Shown: one piece after another, positions 348 to 14,400 of the stretch
Numbering within the stretch: position 1 is the first letter of the stretch
Layout: each line of letters starts with the position of its first letter
NCBI GenBank assembly: GCA_013115145.1
Contig: JAAPAO010000106.1
Coordinates: 1-64,000 of the forward strand
Direction of reading: 5' to 3'
DNA: 64,000 bases
Source: Perkinsus chesapeaki ATCC PRA-425
Lineage: Eukaryota; Protista; Perkinsozoa
Notes under the pieces: generated by a model
Databases searched by the model: none
The model's input: only the letters and a program-made list of their open reading frames with translations
Told to the model about the DNA's origin: nothing
Translations under genes and position numbers: made by a program

Positions 348-2966
348 ATGCCTTACTCTTCTCTGTCGTCTATAATATCAAGAAGGAGCCCCTATAAGGC
401 TAAACAGGCTTCCTATGCATTAAGTGATAGGATTAGAAAAGCACAGACTATCGATCAATTGGTGAGAATACTACGCACTTTGAAGGTAGGGACCTTTGCG
501 ACTGATTCATTCTGATGAGGTGGCAGGCAAGTGCCATAGAAACTGGAAGTGATATGCATGATTTAATGAGTACTCAGAATAGATTGGATTGGCTGAGCAA
601 AGCGGCTATCTTCGGTGGATGGCGATATGGCTATGATAGAGTACCAGAAGAGATAAAGAGTAAGCACCAATACGAGGGCGCATCAACCTTTCATCAGCTC
701 AGATATTTGAACCACTTCAACCAGATGACTTGTCTTTATCACAATTAAATCAATATCTTACTACCGTCATAAAACTTGATATTATCTCATATGCCCCCCG
801 ACCCTCTTCAATGGCTATTCGTTCTGCACTACATGAAGACCATGTTGACTTATCTGAATTGGCAATACTTATGAAAGCATCTGTTAAAGCTGATATCGAC
901 ACACGACCAGCACTCCAAGTTGCCAATGCCATCTTATCATCAGAGAAGTTGCCATCGGAGCCAGAGTAAGCAGCACCACTACCGAGCATATAGTCATCTG
1001 GTGTTGTAGGTTAATCCGTTCCTTTAGTTCACTCGCCTGGGTGGCAGCCCACATAGGGATGAATGATGGTGATTGTGTAACGCCATCAATGATCCTTTCA
1101 CGCATTGTTGAAATACTTATCCCCATGCTGTCTACTCCTGGAACTATTATCACCTTCACTGATGCATCGGAGCTACTGTGGTCATTTGCTAGATCATCTA
1201 CTTCGGACACACCAGAAGCACTGCATAGACTTGTTGAAGCCATTGAGATGTCACTCCTTTCTAGACCCTTGGATGGTACTGTTCGAGAGTACAGTACCAT
1301 CATGTGGTCCCTAGCAAGGCTTAATACTATCAACGATCTGTTTCGCCTGTGCGAAACTTCCCTTGTGAACTTTGGAGAGCTTCCTCCAGCCACCATTGCG
1401 ACGACTTGCTCCGCTCTTGCCAAGGCTCGGCGATTACCACCTCCTAAACAACTATGGCCACCTAAATCGTTCGATGGCATGACAGTGGAACACCTCGGTA
1501 CAGTTGTTAAAGCATCAGCTACTCTTGGTTGGGATGCTACTATACAGGCAGCAGTTGAGAGTGTTATAGAATCAGCTGATTCGTTCGAGGAGTTTATCGA
1601 TCTTCTTCTCGCTTTGAGTGCGGTACCAGCAGCACAGGATGTCTTCAACGTCTCCCTTGATAAATTGCTTCCATCAACCTTCCATCCACTACCATCTTCC
1701 ACTGGGGTTGCCCTTGTAACTTTACTTAGTCGTTCTACCAAGGAAGTCCACCAGCGAAGGGTTTACGAAGCCTGTGAATTAATTAGACTTGGTAGATTGT
1801 CTTGTAACGATTGTTGTACATTGGTATCTGCAATGGCAAAGTCTGGCCTTTATGATGGCAGAATAGTTGATGGTGTTCGTAAACAGATTGAGAATCGTCT
1901 TCTCCCGCAGCTCCTTCCTTACCATAAAGCCAACCTTATGAAGGCATATGCCATTTTACAGCCATCAGTGGTATGTGACTTTTGGGATGCAATCGGTAGT
2001 TCTCGTGACTTGCGTGACGCAAGAATAGTTGCCGCAGTGTGTTGGGCATTGGGCAACCGTTCCTTGCCTACAGCTGATAAATTAGGAGTCCTCCTCCCAG
2101 CTGCAAGTCAATCATTGGAGCGACTGGATGGTATAGAATTGGCCAATGTCGCTAGAGCCTTCGCTAAGCACAAGGTGAAGGATCATGCCCTAGTGAAGGC
2201 AATGGTAGATTCCTTATTGGCTTGTCCTCCTCGGTTGGATGATCGTGCTCGATGCTCGTTACTTTGGTCATTAAGAAGATTAGGTGGTCTCAGTGAAGGT
2301 GTTATTGGACGTATTATTGATGATATGGGAAGTATTAGAGATCTTGCTCCACAAGACTTAACAGCTATTGCCAATGCAACTGATGGTATGGTGTGCGGCA
2401 ACGATAAGGTTGATGAAATAAAACAAGTAATGGAAGAATTATTGGATCAGTTGGCAACGGCAATCAAGACTGGTGACATCTCGCAAGTCGAAAAATGCGA
2501 GGTTGGTAACGTTGGACCAGCATTTGTTCGTACCTTACTGGACAAGTTAAAGATACCCTACGAAGTTACCACTGGAAGAAAAGTGCCTCATCATCACATA
2601 GGCGTTGTCAATACAAACGTCAAATTAACTGTGTCTGAGCTGACCAACACACTCACAGGTGCCAATTCAACGATGTGTTTCGGGAGTGGCTCCGAGTCTT
2701 GCAGACCCAGAGCATATGAAGATGAGATAGACTCTCCTTCTAAAAGTTTTGGAGGTCATGACAGATCCCACCATGGTGAGCTGAAGGCGCTTCGATATCT
2801 TGTCGCGGTCGTTGGTGGTGAAACCTTTGAACGATTGAGCGGTGAAGTTGTAATTGAGATCGACAGTCAACATCCATGTGTATCATGCATCGCGGCCATC
2901 TGGAGGACCTCTAATATCCTCTGCCCAGATGTTACTATCAAACTCAAGTTTCCGTTAATTGCTTAG
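348..2966 (+). CDS. Helical-repeat (OPR/HPR/FASTK-like) protein with C-terminal zinc-dependent deaminase motif, 831 aa; join(348..485,527..659,698..965,1010..2966)
   Basis: Three GT-AG introns (41, 38, 44 nt) join the short ORFs 515..748 and 730..969 to ORF 1041..2966 in frame (2496 nt, no internal stop). The N-terminus MPYSSLSSIISRRSPYKAK is Ser/Arg-rich. Repeated helix motifs: LLWSFAR, IMWSLAR, LVSAMAK, LMKAYAIL, LANVARAFAK, LLWSLRRL. C-terminal HGE (2772..2780) and PCVSC (2874..2888). Confidence 0.8.
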
Positions 2967-3720: not shown

Positions 3721-4939
3721 TTAGAAGCATTTACGATGAACAATAGTCGGTCCAGACTCATCATACTCCTGCTTGGAAATCCACATCTGTTGGAATGTAG
3801 ACAAAGAGGACAAGATAGAGCCTCCAATCCAGACCGAATACTTACGTTCTGGTGGAGCTACAACCTTAATCTTCATAGTAGAAGGTGCCAAAGCAGTGAG
3901 CTCTTTAGTCATCCTTTCACCGATACCATTGAACATAGTAGTGCCTCCAGATAGTACAACATTGGCATATAGATCCTTTCTGATATCAACATCACATTTC
4001 ATGATAGATTGGAATGTGGTATCATGAATGCCACTTGCTTCCTTTCCAATGAAGTTAGGTTGGAATAGCACTTCCGGGCAACGGAAGCGTTCATTACCAA
4101 CAGTGATAATATTGCCATCGGGCAACTCGTACGTTTTTTCCTTCTCACTGCTCTCAGCAGCAGCCTTCATCTCAGTGTCGAAGTCGAGGGCGACATAGGA
4201 CAGTTTCTCCTTAATATCACGCACAATCTCGCGCTCAGCGGTTGTGGTGAATGTGTAGCCACGCTCGGTCAAAATCTTCATCATGAATTCAGTTAGATCA
4301 CGACCAGCAAGATCCAACCTCTGAATAGCATGAGGAAGAGCATAACCCTCATAGATAGGGACAGTGTGACTAACACCATCACCAGAATCCATAACAATAC
4401 CAGTAGTTCTTCCCGAGGCGTACAAAGAGAGGACAGCCTGAATCTGGACATACATGGCAGGAACATTGAAAGTCTCGAACATGAGCTGAGTCATACGCTC
4501 ACGGTTAGCCTTGGGATTCAGAGGGGCCTCGGTCAACAGAACCTGAAAAGGAAACACTTGCAGAATATTAAGATATCGCAGACAACTCACCGGATGTTCC
4601 TCGGGAGAAACACGAAGTTCATTGTAAAAGGTATGATGCCAAATCTTCTCCATATCATCCCAGTTGGTAACAATACCATGCTCGATCGGGTATTTCAATG
4701 TGAGGATACCACGCTTAGACTGAGCCTCATCACCAACATAAGAATCCTTCTGGTCCATTCCAACCATAATGCCAGGCCTGAAAAAACAAGTGACATCAAC
4801 GAGATGGAGTATCTTACATCTTAGGTCGACCAACGATTGAAGGGAAGACGCTACGAGGAGCATCATCACCAGCAAAGCCGGCCTTGCACATACCACTGCC
4901 GTTATCGATGACCAAAGCGGTAATTTCCTCGTCAGCCAT
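3721..4939 (-). CDS. ACT: Actin, 376 aa; complement(join(3721..4542,4591..4777,4818..4939))
   Basis: Canonical actin sequence ([28 protein letters not shown]...TIVHRKCF). Removing a 40-nt and a 48-nt GT-AG intron gives exactly 1131 nt. Confidence 0.99.
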
Positions 4940-7652: not shown

Positions 7653-8060
7653 TATGATGGATGAAAGGTCTTACAACTGTTATCGATCCTCGACCACACG
7701 CCATCAACTGATCCTAGGCATCAGCCCTTCGCGACTCTCCGGTAGCTCCAAGCCTGCCGGCTATCATCAGCAACTGCAATATCTCTCTTCGTTGCCAGTA
7801 CGATCGATTAACAAAGTATAAAGTAAACATTAAGAATAACAACGACATTAAGAATTGTTGTGAAAACATTGAACGCGGATTGATCATAAGGATCTACCTA
7901 AGACCGTTGTAAGGACAAAAAAGGTTTTGTTTAAACCGCGACAAATGGTCTGACAAATACGATCAGCCGTTACAAGCTATCATTGTAGAACTAAAAAAAG
8001 TGTTTTTCGGAACAACATAACTTCATCATTGACATCTGTACAGCCAGATTGAGAGCATCA

Positions 8061-9000
8061 TCAATCCACGTCGTCACCGAGAAGACCATCGTCTTGCTCT
8101 TCATAAGCACCATACGAGCCACTACTCGTATCAAAGGCGTATCTTCTGCTAGCGTTGTCATAGATGTGACATATCTTGGTGATTATCTCGTCGCACAAAC
8201 CTATTGGCGCAGAAACAATGGAACCCGTCACCTGAGTGAATCGTCCGATGAGATGTTGGAACTTCTCTTGGCATGTCATAGAGAAGGCTGCAACGTGGAA
8301 GTCTTTTAAGGGATCATCCGTTTCGATGTAACCGTCCGTAGCAGCATTGAAAGCGGTGAGACTCTGCCCGCTACTGAAAAGAAGGAATAAGTTTCATCGA
8401 TTATACGCGGTTACGCACTACTGCTATGCATATCAACGATACTTACGCAATATAATTATAATCCCCACATGCAACGACAACTGCCAATCATCATAGTTGT
8501 CGTTAACATGGTAAACGAGGTGCATATTAAGCGAGTTAGGGAGATAGCAGCGGGTGGGACGGATTATTGATCCATGCCGGGTTATTTGAGAGGTTGCTTC
8601 TACAGCTCTGCATTCGTTGTTCTAAAAGGAGTTGAGAGTGAAGCTACTGTTTTGTTGTGCTCGTATGTCTCACCTCTGTACTTGATCTCATGGCCTTCAA
8701 CTCCGTGAAAAGTCCGGGCAACTTTGACTGTAGTGAAGAAGGTGATGATAGAGTTGATGGTCTTTTCCCCAATAGTGACATTCGTTCATTGGCTGCTCGT
8801 GAATAATGTCCCATTGTTGTTACCATACGGTCGGCGCCGCGTTTGCCCCATGGTTTAAGAATTCTACGCCCCTTCACAGGACTGGGCGTAATATCCTCAT
8901 CTACTTCCATTTCATTGTCACTATTAACAGTAACTTTAATACAGTATGGGAGGCGTAAGGTTAGATATATGATATATGGGATAATGGCAGACGGTGACAT
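8061..9000 (-). pseudogene. Secreted-protein family member 2, apparent 1-nt frameshift in exon 2
   Basis: Exons 9000..8674, 8621..8447, 8374..8061 are homologous to member 1. Exon 2 is 175 nt (phase 1 instead of the family phase 2); the shifted frame near its end reads AVVVACGDYNYIA, matching member 3 TVAVACGGDSYYA. Confidence 0.55.
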
Positions 9001-10053
9001 TATCGACAGAAATAACAAAAGAAGATCGTATAATTTGCCTTTATGGAAGCAGCCACATTGGCTATTCAATTAAATGATTAACGGATGAATGAAGATTTGG
9101 ACTGATAATACCAGTCTAATCGCCTGAGGAAGATGCGTGGAAAGTTTTAGTCGCAACTTTTCGAGCATTCCTTGGTATCGTCCAAGTTATCAAGATTCAT
9201 GCTCCTACGGAAGTTGGTCACGCACGAAATGGCCGCATTTCATCGCACTGAGCCATAATGGCTCAGCCATTTGGAAGGTCTGCGTCTCTCGGTCTACATG
9301 GATTCTCTATAGACTGACAGATCTATGACTCTCTATTAGAGAAGCACATTTAACTTGTACGCTTGCCTCTAAGGACATTTTTCAGGGTGAAGATTAGCGG
9401 TAGTCAACAGGATGAGTCTGAGTTCTGCTACCAGCTCACGATTGGTTTCATTATCCTTCGAGACGTATAAGAATGAGATGAGGGTAGGTGATCAAAAGAC
9501 AAATCATTATTCCTAAAATATTGGATTTGAGATCATCATTACGATTTGCATGGGACCATCATAATACAACCGGCTGTGACGTAAGACAAGACCTTCATGG
9601 CGCATGAAGCCCGTGGCATTGTGCAATGCAATGACCAAATCACTATCAATGCTAAAGATATCGGATATGATGGAATAATGGAGCCTTATAAGATATTGCA
9701 GGAGGTATGGAGCTAAAGAGTGATGATACTTGGAAAAGATGTTCTTACTTTTCAAAACTAACACGAGAGTGTCATGGTTATCTCTGCGCTTGCAACACCT
9801 AAAGTGTTGGTTCCGAATGGAACCCTTTGAGGTATAGTAATCAAGTCCCAAAGGTTAGCTTTGCAACCTCATTGGGAGCGACAGCGACTGATAACGAATG
9901 TTACAGTCTCTTTCTAGTATAATATATGTATCGTACTGATAATCTCATGATAACAATATACAACTCAACATTTATAATTCGGATAACAACACTCTTATCA
10001 TGCTCACCGTTAACATCCACGTCATAAATCATCTTTCATTAAGGATGCAAACA

Positions 10054-10863
10054 TCATTCATACAAATCTTCCTCGTACATATTGCACATTTTCCGGACTA
10101 TTTCATCACATTGGCTCATTGGCGCAAGTCCTTCGTCTGTGTGAACGTTCTGACCAAATACTGGAATTTCTCCTGGCAAGTCATCGGGAAGACTATGGCA
10201 TTAAAATGCCCCAAAGGGTCAGCTGTGACAACAGACGGGTAGTTGGTGAAGGATACGGTTGATCCGTCACTGCGAACTTGACAATCTATGCCTGTCAGTG
10301 GCAAGGATACCAACACTTACGCATAATAAGAATCTCCCCCACATGCAACGGCAACTGTTGGCTTCTCATTCTGACTACTGTAGTAAGTAATGAACTTACT
10401 ATTGTCAGAACTAGGGAGATCGCAGTATGTTGTATCTCCGTGTTTTACTTCAGTCATTCGGCATATATTTTTCTAACACAAATTTCGAGTTCTACTTTTC
10501 TGACTCCTTCGAAAATGTAATACCGCTCCTTACCTCTGCATTTGACCTCATATCACGTAAATCCGAGAACATCCTAGGAAACTTCGTCTCAGTAATCGAC
10601 GAAGTCGGCGATGATCTCTTCCCCAAGATTGACTTTCCTTTTCCAGCTGATGGATGACGTACACCCTTTTTGGCATGTATTTGCGAGCACTTACCTAATG
10701 GTTTGACAATCCTAGGTCTCCTCGCAAGACTATGCGAAATATCATCATCTACTTCCATTGCCTCATCACTCCTAACTGGTCCAGCAGCTTTAACACAGTA
10801 AGAAAGTAGTATGGTTAGATATATAATATATTTCATATAGAGAATAAGAATGGGGGGTTACAT
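10054..10863 (-). pseudogene. Secreted-protein family member 3, nonsense codon at homologous codon 2 and frameshift in exon 3
   Basis: The homologous start reads ATG TAA (TCA in paralogs). Exons about 10836..10534, 10472..10321 and from 10269. Exon 3 reads MTCQEKFQYLVRTFTQTKD, then the family motif APMSQCDEIVRKMCNMYEE continues in another frame near 10125. Confidence 0.6.
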
Positions 10864-11173
10864 CCAATGAAACTAAAGCCAATGGAGGGTAACCTATCAC
10901 CTTCCACCATCAGCGGAGGGATACCACCGTTGCGTGAGTGAGTTTATCGGTCAACGCCGAGAACACCTCAGACGAGTGCGGCCTTTATGGAGCCAATCGT
11001 ATTCAAAGGGGATGTATATAGTTTAGGCAATGCTGGGTAAAACCACTCATGAGTTGGGTCATGTAGCGCCAGGCATCCGGCATTTCACTCAAACATTAAA
11101 GGCATCCTCATTTAACACAAGAGACCACGAAGATAATAGAGTTTCGTTTGTTGCAAACCGTCTACGTGTCGAA

Positions 11174-11246
11174 AGCCTTCTGCCGGAGTCGAACCGACGA
11201 CCTCCCGCTTACTAAGCGGGTGCTCTACCAACTAAGCTAAGAAGGC
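11174..11246 (-). tRNA. tRNA-Thr(AGT)
   Basis: Full cloverleaf on the minus strand: acceptor GCCTTCT/AGAAGGC, anticodon stem CCCGC/GCGGG with loop TTAGTAA, T-loop TTCGACT; 73 nt. Confidence 0.95.
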
Positions 11247-11405
11247 TGGAAAAGCCTTTTTGGAAAAGTAGTTCGTCAAATTTACCCGAATAGACAATCT
11301 TGCAGGCTTGTCTTCTCTTGAGCTTTCCTCAATATTATGTCACATGGGATTCGGTCCTCTTCCTACTGTCCATTCTATTAGGGTTGTTGTTACATTCACA
11401 CAGCC

Positions 11406-14400
11406 ATGGCTACAATTGGTAATGAATCTCTCCTTCTCCAGCGGGAGTCTGGTATGCTACGCCCTCATAGAGTTATTGGTGTAGTATGTGGCCCACAAAG
11501 GGCATCAGTAACTAAGGTTGGATCACAAACCTTTATTACTGCTGTTACACACAAGTCGTGGCAGGTAAACCGGGTATTATTAAGCATTAGAAGTATTGGA
11601 AATCCGATTAGGTTTATGATACAGAAAGTCTCGATATAAGATATATTCAACCAATAAGAGAGGAGACTGTAAGTTGTATAACATCCATTGGTGACACTAC
11701 AATAGCTGGTTACGGTAATGGAAAGATAGCTGTATGGCATAAGATGATACCTATTGTAACGATGACTAAGGATGGACATAGAGGCACTGTTGAGTAGTAT
11801 AGGGTAGAGGGCAATACGGTTAATAACAATAATGATTTCGTCCGCTATTACGGTTTTAACCTCCTCTGGACATCCTCCTTTTATAGGTCATTATTCCTAC
11901 TTGGTAGTACATTCCTACTAAGTGTAGGAGCTAACGGTAATGAAGTATTATTATGGACACTACCATCATCATTGACCAAACCCGGTGGTGAAATTGATGG
12001 TCCTATTAGACTTAATATTGGTTTTGAGCTCACAGCAGCTACACACATACCTACATATCTTAACAAGATGCTAATAGCTGGTCGAGGGGGCGAACTTGAG
12101 CTTCGGAATTTGAAGACTCGTCGAAAAATACACACTTTTGGGTGTCTGTCTAATGACTCTGCTATAACAGCATTATCACCCTCGCCAGCTCTCGATGTTG
12201 CTGCTATAGGCTTCCAAAGCGGCCGTATATGCCTTATAAACTGCAGGACTGATGAGCTGTTATTTACCCTATCAACAACTGAGAGTAGGGCATCTGGCTC
12301 TATCACTGGTCTTACTTTCCGTACTGATAATGGCGATCATAATGGGGTACTGATATCGAGTACATCTGACGGTGATGTATTTATATGGGACTTGACCGAG
12401 AAGCTACTACACAGCTCTATAAAGCATGCTCATGATGGTAGTATAACAACTTTAACAGCTTTATCTGGCGAACCGCTTGTTGTTACTACTGGAGTTGATA
12501 ACACTATGTGTGTGTGGATATTTGATAAACCTGATGGTAGTCTAAGGTTGTTACGTCAACGTAAAGGAGCTAGTGAGCCTATTAAACACATTGAGATGTA
12601 TGGTAATGATCCTACTAATAATGCCGAATCAAATGATTTACTTATTACCTCTGGTAGTAGGGTTGGTAAAATAAGTCTCATTCAGCAGAAACAGAATAAG
12701 ATATGGAGTATGTCGAATATATCGAAAGCAACAGCAGGTCTAGGATCCAGGATGAAGTGGAGAAGGCCGACTGATGGTAATGGTGAGCTGGGCGAAATCG
12801 TGTCAATAGCTGGTACAAGAATACGCCAATATGACTGGCCGAATGTTATCACTGCTAATAAGGGATCTACCAACGCTACTGTGTGGAGTGGATATCAACA
12901 GGCATTAGTAAATCGTCAATTAGATGTACCAGATAATAAATCACAAGTTGTTAAAGTGGCTGTCAGCCCTTGTGGTAACTTTGCCTGTGTTGGGCTTAAG
13001 AATGGTGAAGTCCATCGATTTAACCTACAGAGCTGTCTTTATAGGGGATTGGTAACAAAGCATGAGAATGCTGGTGAGGTAGCGATCTTGGAGTTCTTAT
13101 CATCGACTAGTATATTATCGGCATCATCGACCTCACGTGACCTACGTATTACTACATTCGGATCTGGTATGAAATCGACACCTAAGTTGAGAAGTATATC
13201 TTTGCCGGAAGGAAACGGTACAATACAGTGTGCTGCTGTCAATGGGCCACTTGTAGCAGTTGCTCTGAATAAAGGGGAAGGAGTATTGGTCGTGGATATG
13301 GATTCGGGTAGGGTCGTGAGACGTATGGATGAGCTTAAGGGTGGTGTTACTGCTATGGGATGGTCACATAGTGGACAGCTGCTTACTGTTGCCGATTCTG
13401 ATGCAAAAATGGTAATATATGATCTACCAACAGCAAGTGTAGTTGATAGAGTCATATTTACTTCACCTGTTATGGCGCTATGCTGGAGTAATGGTGATGC
13501 ATTCCTTATCACTAGTCACCCACACACGGCGAAGTACGGTGCAATGCATATATGGACTAATACCAAACTATTAGGACATGATTCGGATAATAATAACGGC
13601 ATGCTTACAGTCCCTAAGGTGTATGTACCAATAGATGAGCCTATAAGGGAGGGGGATGAGGAAGACCGTGCTGATGATGATGATAATGTTCAGGAGGAGC
13701 CCTCAGCAGTCCTTAATAAAGCTGTATCGTACACCCCACAGAGTAGAGGAGCAATAACACTATCGAATGTACCGAGAACAAGTTGGCAATATGCCCTTCG
13801 ACTTGATGAGATTAAAGAACGTAATAAGCCTGTCGCAGCACCTAAGAAGCCAGAGAGTGCTCCTTTTTTCCTGCCGACTGTGTATGATGGCTCAAAGCCT
13901 TTATTCGCGCCATTGCAAGCATCTAAGGGTGAAGGAGACGAGAAGGAAGAGCCTGAAAAGAAACGGATGAAGTTTGATGATAGTGTTGATTTTGACTCAA
14001 CTCTGGACTCGGAGTTTGAAAGGGATATTGCTGCGAGGGACTGGGAGGCTGCTATGGAGTATCTTAAAAAGCAAACAGCAAGTGGACTTCATTTGTGTAT
14101 AAGTGAAATAAGAGATGATAACTTACGGTACGCTGTAGAGTACTTTGAAGCCATGGCGTCTACAGGGAAGGATTATGATCTAGTGCAGGTGATGGAGGAA
14201 TAAAGCATTCAATGGTTAACTGATTGATCATCTTCAGGTGCAGCTGTCTCTGTTCCTTAAGTTCCATGCTGAGACATTGCTAGAATCAACTGATGAGGAG
14301 CTACGAAACGCTGTTAAGCAGCTTAGTAATAGATTGACAAGCAACTTCAAGGTAAGATGATAATTATAATAGTATATAGTTATATTGTTATTCAGGGGTT

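Follow-up and report, generated by a model that had tools for sequence, protein, structure and literature searches.

We analysed a 64,000-nucleotide stretch of DNA from Perkinsus chesapeaki ATCC PRA-425 (GenBank assembly GCA_013115145.1, contig JAAPAO010000106.1, positions 1 to 64,000 of the forward strand; hereafter referred to as the window), in which a gene at positions 348 to 2,966 encodes a protein of two modules: a predicted alpha-solenoid of helical repeats and, at the C-terminus, a domain predicted to adopt the fold of zinc-dependent deaminases. Perkinsus is an oyster parasite whose lineage is sister to the dinoflagellates. The combination recalls the PPR-DYW proteins, the plant-type factors for organellar C-to-U editing; hairpin arrays of this general kind can read single-stranded RNA. 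The initial annotation had proposed a non-plant analogue of the PPR-DYW architecture, and the proposal is borne out, in that the deaminase fold and the solenoid of the HPR/OPR/FASTK type both hold in predicted structures. Full-text literature searches returned no paper describing an HPR/FASTK-deaminase fusion. What we document is the structure of the gene, how each of its two modules folds, the conservation of the catalytic residues and the purifying selection on the gene. As for function, we give about even odds to a role in which the protein deaminates cytidine at defined sites of an RNA, either one that is encoded in the nucleus and imported or some other target.

The deaminase domain is marked by two short motifs, H768-G-E770 and P802-C-V-S-C806, both of which had been pointed out in the initial annotation and are present at these places. 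Exactly one HxE and one PCxxC occur in the 831-residue protein, and the pair is unique in the six reading frames of the window. When the protein was shuffled 200,000 times, an HxE followed 20–45 residues later by a PCxxC arose with a frequency of 5e-4. In structures predicted with AlphaFold2 (AF2), H768-G-E770 opens a helix spanning residues 769–781 and P802-CVSC806 opens a helix spanning residues 804–817; with HxE at the start of helix 2 and PCxxC at the start of helix 3, the geometry is the canonical one of deaminases. The wider helix-2 motif reads R765-x-x-H-x-E-x-K772 (R765-S-H-H768-G-E770-L-K772). The predicted order of elements is helix 1, strand 1, a strand-2 hairpin, an insert of about 30 residues, helix 2, strand 3, helix 3 and strand 4, and the protein terminates two residues past strand 4 (...KFPLIA). 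The AF2 models of the deaminase and the solenoid were built from three sequences only and have predicted local distance difference test (pLDDT) values of 68–76; for the C-terminal domain modelled from the three-sequence alignment, the predicted template modelling score (pTM) is 0.71. The features of the domain are located as follows.

2517..2963, + strand: deaminase-fold domain (residues 683–831), as predicted from AF2 models, VIA, Foldseek and Atlas shape matches to PF14424
2685..2771, + strand: insert of about 30 residues before helix 2 (residues 739–767), almost invariant in the orthologues, pLDDT below 50
2772..2780, + strand: H768-G-E770, opening helix 2, with H768 as the predicted zinc ligand and E770 as the predicted catalytic glutamate
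2874..2888, + strand: P802-C803-V-S-C806, opening helix 3, with C803 and C806 as predicted zinc ligands

Comparison of the modelled domain with known structures returned deaminases almost exclusively. VIA-align, which is independent of Foldseek, was run against 48,161 PDB representatives, and its 17 best matches were all deaminases. DddB/BadTF3 (9k3e) scored Z 8.5, a synthetic PPR-DYW protein (9kfx) came second with Z 7.5, and DddA reached Z 6.1; the other matches included AID, TOD6, APOBEC3G/3H/1, guanine deaminase, a T6S cytidine-deaminase toxin, CDA and blasticidin-S deaminase, together with TadA and ADAT2 (Z 4.7–5.0). No RAP or PD-(D/E)XK fold was found among the top VIA matches, and a RAP-domain reading of the C-terminus is rejected by this search of the whole PDB set. 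The 50 best Foldseek matches in the PDB were also deaminases except for TOD6 (9lcx), the title of which is silent on the fold, with weak E-values of about 0.1 or more. The agreement of the AF2 and ESMFold models with the VIA result upholds the deaminase fold that the initial annotation had suggested.

Among named families, the closest by shape appears to be the bacterial toxin clade BURPS668_1122 (PF14424). The ESM Atlas model of the P. olseni orthologue P0012, predicted with ESMFold, aligned with PF14424-bearing CdiA toxins at template modelling (TM) scores of 0.64 and 0.54, and the AF2 model aligned with PF14424 family members at TM 0.60 and 0.56. In ESM feature space the domain lies near the PF14424 Toxin-deaminase cluster (top) and the MafB19, SCP1.201, MsddA, SsdA, YwqJ and OTT_1508 clusters. 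The BURPS668_1122 clade features RxxDxExK in helix 2 and CxxCxS in helix 3; what unites it with SCP1.201 is that the second residue past the catalytic E is K or Q (Iyer et al. 2011, PMC3239186). With respect to the first motif, the R, E and K positions fit and H768 stands for D; with respect to the second, all three orthologues have C-V-S-C-I-A, with A instead of S. Of the two SCP1.201 features, [HD]xEx[KQ] in helix 2 fits H-G-E-L-K, and the N expected at the end of strand 3 is D here and N in the other two lineages. Because of R765-x-x-H768-x-E770-x-K772, the insert, the end after strand 4 and CxxCxA, the domain fits the BURPS668_1122/SCP1.201 group and can be taken to work like its members, formal membership being unproven as no hidden Markov model (HMM) scores; that of the SCP1.201/DddA-like family (PF14428) gave no match. 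The likeness to the toxins of this group is one of shape (TM 0.56–0.64, and Z 8.5 with DddB), whereas the Perkinsus domain differs in having H rather than D as the first ligand and CxxCxA rather than CxxCxS. The Perkinsus protein is, moreover, eukaryotic and carries an RNA-binding-type solenoid where the toxins have modules for secretion or delivery; an accompanying immunity gene would not be expected. Membership of the DYW family was rejected on motifs: the domain has HGELK rather than HxEK, lacks the C-terminal CxC and the DYW tail, and gave no DYW Pfam match. Since the PF14424 members that have been tested deaminate cytidine, their substrate being single-stranded DNA (bioRxiv 10.1101/2023.05.21.541555), cytidine is the likely base for the Perkinsus enzyme as well.

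Shape and repeat pattern suggest that the N-terminal ~680 residues form an alpha-solenoid of the HPR/OPR/FASTK/RESC class, whose repeat-bearing part is located as follows.

859..2516, + strand: predicted alpha-solenoid of about 14 HPR/FASTK-like helical hairpins (residues ~145–682), with intron 3 inside the span

A motif of the type LxxLxW[SA]xA[RK] recurs in 14 copies between residues 145 and 631 at spacings of 32–48 residues (median 37). The full-length AF2 model (pLDDT 76) consists of about 27 helices followed by the deaminase, with pLDDT mostly 80–94 in the solenoid. Foldseek matched the solenoid in the PDB to trypanosome RESC6 (E 5e-7) and RESC8 (the two ranging from E 5e-7 to 1e-5), to Toxoplasma gondii mitoribosomal repeat proteins (E 2.6e-5), and also to PPR10 and to mitoribosomal repeat proteins of Chlamydomonas and Polytomella. 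The ESM features placed it with FAST_1/RESC6/RAP-protein clusters at 0.95 (200 of 256 features shared), and its neighbours in AlphaFold DB and the Atlas are overwhelmingly named 'RAP domain-containing' or FAST-kinase-like. The spaced copies, the helices and the fold matches thus agree with the repeat motifs and HPR/OPR/FASTK-type solenoid of the initial annotation. The sequence HMMs of repeat families were all silent: the Pfam models FAST_1, FAST_2 and RESC6 found no match in the P. chesapeaki protein or its orthologues (E up to 1–10), the Pfam RAP model does not score, and the Pfam PPR model found no match in the repeats. A C-terminal RAP domain is absent; the deaminase fold stands in that place, and no nuclease-like fold occurs among the structural matches. 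Repeat proteins of the HPR/OPR/FASTK class are expanded in alveolates (Hillebrand et al. 2018, PMC6212722).

Orthologues were recovered only in Perkinsus: one from P. olseni (full-length P0012, 838 residues, a model that keeps intron 2 as a 17-residue insertion) and one from a Perkinsus-like Logan contig (L001/P0002). The three lineages are 52–62% identical overall. Conservation is complete at H768, E770, C803 and C806 in the three lineages, and R765, K772, P802 and almost the whole insert are invariant too. The catalytic core is 72–77% identical as compared with ~50% for the solenoid, with nonsynonymous divergence (dN) of 0.18 versus 0.43 and synonymous divergence (dS) saturated, and it is the slowest-evolving part of exon 4. 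These sequence comparisons indicate that the gene is under purifying selection. Because E770 is not a zinc ligand and is nevertheless conserved, the pattern argues for catalysis rather than for a merely structural zinc site.

In P. olseni, contig JABANN010000477.1 (L002) carries a tandem pair of genes at 8001–10432 (P0009) and 10491–13020 (the orthologue). The upstream copy, P0009 (766 residues), lies 59 nucleotides before the ATG of the orthologue, with which it shares 28% identity across the entire solenoid (E 1e-33). The reading frame of P0009 ends past the strand-2 region, which leaves the solenoid but neither HxE nor PCxxC. The annotated P. olseni protein P0003 is cut short, while the DNA encodes an intact HxE...PCxxC at 12904–13020. 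The 90%-identity cluster of P0003 mixes unrelated P. olseni proteins (a DDB1-like protein, an RRM protein and the paralogue P0009), apparently chained via fused gene models such as P0010 (2049 residues); consequently, paralogues can hide inside a representative's cluster in homologue searches. Word-indexed searches with the whole exon-4 protein and with the C-terminal region alone returned three Perkinsus clusters only, a metagenome scan with conserved peptides gave 566 pattern matches and no relatives, and a homologue search started from P0009 found nothing. None of the searches brought up a P. marinus protein.

From these features we infer RNA binding, an organellar location, catalysis and the nature of the substrate. 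The nuclear P. chesapeaki gene would give rise to a two-module protein, the first module of which, with its ~14 heptatricopeptide-like repeats, most likely binds a single-stranded stretch of organellar, probably mitochondrial, RNA. A mitochondrial location is suggested by the presequence-like composition of the N-terminus, since the first 26 residues include four K/R, eight S/T and no D/E, as the initial annotation had noted for acidic residues. The second module would be a compact zinc deaminase in place of the usual terminal RAP domain, probably descended from bacterial polymorphic-toxin deaminases of the BURPS668_1122/SCP1.201 group, ending after strand 4 and having its catalytic residues intact. 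The repeat array would place the deaminase on a defined RNA site, where C would be converted to U as by PPR-DYW proteins in plants. A mitochondrial mRNA is a less likely substrate than an RNA encoded in the nucleus and imported into the mitochondrion, for instance a tRNA or a piece of relocated rRNA, because a comparison of RNA-seq and cDNA with four Perkinsus mitochondrial genomes found no RNA-DNA differences (Gornik et al. 2022, PMC9550989); classical mRNA editing in Perkinsus mitochondria is unlikely for the same reason. All mitochondrial tRNAs of Perkinsus are imported (Gornik et al. 2022, PMC9550989). C34-to-U editing of imported tRNA-Trp for the decoding of UGA was considered and down-weighted, since one evident reason to edit a tRNA disappears with the nuclear tRNA-Trp(UCA) candidate genes found in Perkinsus (Gornik et al. 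2022, PMC9550989).

Several points weigh against a site-directed RNA cytidine deaminase. The absence of RNA-DNA differences in mitochondrial transcripts and the tRNA-Trp(UCA) genes, both cited above, are among them, and the P. marinus members of the BURPS668_1122 clade were judged 'apparently inactive' (Iyer et al. 2011, PMC3239186). DddB and DddA, the nearest solved structures to the deaminase domain, both act on DNA. Pfam (E up to 10) and NCBIfam searches with the exon-4 protein, its C-terminal pieces and the orthologues found no relevant family, and single-sequence and profile searches of the PDB gave chance matches only. Because no sequence HMM or profile recognises either module, the assignment of the C-terminal ~150 residues to the deaminase fold rests on predicted structures, themselves computed from the three Perkinsus sequences. 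A search of 1.84 billion representatives with the C-terminal profile found no relative outside Perkinsus, the sole non-Perkinsus return being a spurious RTX-like repeat protein (P0004). The first 46 residues, of which 41 are identical to those of P. olseni (89–91%) with 29 of these 41 codons differing synonymously, appear far more conserved than a typical transit peptide; their pattern ASYAL[SR]DR..[KR] is also kept in the paralogue P0009. Since this is too much conservation for an ordinary transit peptide, the N-terminal region may hold a functional element besides targeting. Expression of the gene and the presence of its three introns are read from comparison with the orthologues only.

Some of these points suit another reading, which we hold to be possible if doubtful, namely that the protein is a non-catalytic RNA-binding or mitoribosomal scaffold whose deaminase fold is kept as a zinc-stabilised RNA- or protein-binding module. 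It would then act like the HPR 'joint' proteins that hold fragmented rRNAs, its module serving in the way suggested for the P. marinus proteins (Iyer et al. 2011, PMC3239186). The unedited mitochondrial transcripts and the P. marinus proteins called inactive speak for this reading, as do the T. gondii mitoribosomal repeat proteins among the best solenoid matches and the loss of the catalytic half, with retention of the solenoid, in P. olseni P0009. A scaffold would not, however, readily account for the invariance of the non-liganding E770, along with that of H768, C803, C806, K772 and nearly all of the insert, across three lineages that have diverged widely, or for the catalytic core being the slowest-evolving part of exon 4.

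If the protein is an RNA deaminase, its base could in principle be adenosine. An A-to-I enzyme of the TadA/ADAT kind, acting on adenosine in imported tRNAs rather than on cytidine, would share the HxE and PCxxC signature and be in keeping with TadA and ADAT2 appearing among the fold matches and with the import of all Perkinsus mitochondrial tRNAs (Gornik et al. 2022, PMC9550989), but it is unlikely: the nearest proteins by shape and features are cytidine deaminases (DddB, DYW, AID/APOBEC and the PF14424 members tested on C), and the helix-4 division, which includes TadA, has C-terminal helices that are missing from the domain. We regard as quite improbable a cytosine deaminase that acts on mitochondrial or nuclear DNA as a mutator or in defence and uses the solenoid as a protein scaffold. 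The DNA activity of the top solved matches, DddB and DddA, and of the tested PF14424 members speaks for it, but this class of solenoid is almost confined to organellar RNA metabolism (RESC, FASTK, HPR and RAP proteins, mitoribosomes), and a gene kept in the manner of a housekeeping gene would cause mutations if its product deaminated DNA without regulation. That the C-terminus has a RAP or other non-deaminase fold, its motif pair being due to chance, is very improbable indeed, for although no deaminase family matches at the sequence level and the structural models are of moderate confidence, the search of the whole PDB set is topped by deaminases only, two independent predictors concur, and a motif pair so rare in shuffled sequences falls precisely where the helices begin.

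A site-directed RNA cytidine deaminase of this build resembles known systems in part. It shares with PPR-DYW factors an N-terminal targeting region, an array of ~35–38-residue helical hairpins and a C-terminal zinc deaminase with HxE...CxxC, but the Perkinsus repeats are of the HPR/FASTK/RESC type and the deaminase has no PG box; the Perkinsus protein is a fusion independent of the DYW family. FASTK/HPR-RAP proteins (human FASTKD1-5, apicomplexan RAP/HPR proteins, RESC6/RESC8) have the same type of solenoid, a presequence-like N-terminus and a C-terminal enzymatic add-on, whereas in the Perkinsus protein their RAP domain (PD-(D/E)XK-like) is swapped for a deaminase. The two P. marinus deaminases of the BURPS668_1122 clade (e.g. 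gi 294948387), which have transit peptides and for which a role in organellar RNA was proposed (Iyer et al. 2011, PMC3239186), come from the same genus and were assigned to the same clade, a comparison made by description only; no repeat module was described for them, and here the catalytic residues are intact in three lineages. Members of this clade that bear transit peptides have been on record from Perkinsus since 2011; what appears to be new is the fusion to helical repeats.

Proteins with the same two-part architecture were found by structure. The best match in AlphaFold DB to the full-length model is A0A812PEI0 (residues 206–871 aligned with residues 12–679 of the query, E 4e-12), in an alignment running from the solenoid through the deaminase; A0A813IYQ7 aligns likewise, and both entries also match the isolated deaminase domain. 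Further look-alikes in AlphaFold DB are A0A813FCG5, A0A812R305, A0A7S4RR88, A0A812XTS1 and A0A1Q9DJE6. The best AlphaFold DB matches to the isolated domain are eukaryotic entries (E 4e-6 to 1e-3), several of them automatically named as CMP/dCMP-type deaminase and one as 'pentatricopeptide repeat-containing protein', and these outrank bacterial entries named 'deaminase of polymorphic toxin system' and 'BURPS668_1122 family'. In the ESM Atlas, a cluster of 109 eukaryotic proteins of ~790 residues with FAST_1/RESC6 repeats has TM 0.74–0.75 to the deaminase domain and TM 0.58 to the whole protein. The organism field of the look-alike entries is blank; they are probably from dinoflagellates, the accession blocks A0A812, A0A813 and A0A1Q9 being those that we take to belong to Symbiodinium and Polarella proteomes. 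The look-alikes are detectable by structure only and none by sequence, so that the resemblance is one of shape, with common descent not shown.

Apart from land plants and a handful of protists that have PPR-DYW proteins, no enzyme is known to us to carry out organellar substitutional RNA editing; dinoflagellates are the most striking case. The sister lineage of the dinoflagellates would have independently built a repeat array with a deaminase from other parts, a bacterial-toxin deaminase and repeats of the HPR/FASTK type. Only the structural look-alikes with the blank organism field suggest a connection to editing in dinoflagellates. We tentatively put forward, as a rather unlikely extension, that solenoid and toxin-deaminase fusions are an ancestral dinozoan family, whose expansion in core dinoflagellates supplies the catalysts of substitutional organellar editing, at least C-to-U, and of which Perkinsus keeps one or two intact members acting on, for example, imported tRNAs. 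As a candidate RNA editor, the protein provides a concrete family to seek, count and test in dinoflagellates. In Perkinsus itself it poses a puzzle, as an intact and strongly conserved deaminase is present although the mitochondrial transcripts are reported to be unedited. Enzyme engineers, too, may find the naturally truncated deaminase of interest for its compactness, some 110 residues counted from strand 2 to the C-terminus.

The gene model underlying these analyses comprises four exons, which join to an open coding sequence of 2496 nucleotides encoding 831 residues.

348..485, + strand: exon 1 (residues 1–46), a basic, hydroxylated N-terminus that is a putative mitochondrial presequence, and a conserved first helix
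486..526, + strand: intron 1, 41 nucleotides, GTAGGG...CAG; join 'RTLK|ASAIE' as in P. olseni P0003/P0011
527..659, + strand: exon 2, collinear with the P. olseni orthologue
660..697, + strand: intron 2, 38 nucleotides, GTAAGC...CAG; join 'EEIKTQIFEPL', compared with 'EEIKSQIFEPL' in P. olseni P0011
698..965, + strand: exon 3, from the spliced reading frame
966..1009, + strand: intron 3, 44 nucleotides, GTAAGC...TAG; join 'SEPE|LIRSF', identical in the NCBI model P0001
1010..2966, + strand: exon 4, with a TAG stop at 2964–2966; translation 100% identical to P0001

The spliced 831-residue frame given in the initial annotation is confirmed by its GT..AG introns and by the exon joins; across exons 1–3 these yield the same N-terminal sequence as in the P. 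olseni orthologues (P0003, P0011). The NCBI model FOL47_000378 (P0001, 683 residues) takes a Met within exon 3 as its start and is without exons 1 and 2, and the first 148 residues of the 831-residue protein are absent from it. At 41, 38 and 44 nucleotides, the introns are all very short.

The first 347 nucleotides of the window contain no trace of a tandem paralogue such as that of P. olseni. An antisense open reading frame of 285 residues (884–1741, − strand) lies wholly within exons 3 and 4; it is probably a by-product of sense-strand codon usage and bears no sign of being a gene. Downstream, an actin gene (3721–4896, − strand) stands tail-to-tail with the deaminase gene. An actin neighbour is also found at the end of the Logan contig L001, which shows that synteny is kept across Perkinsus lineages.

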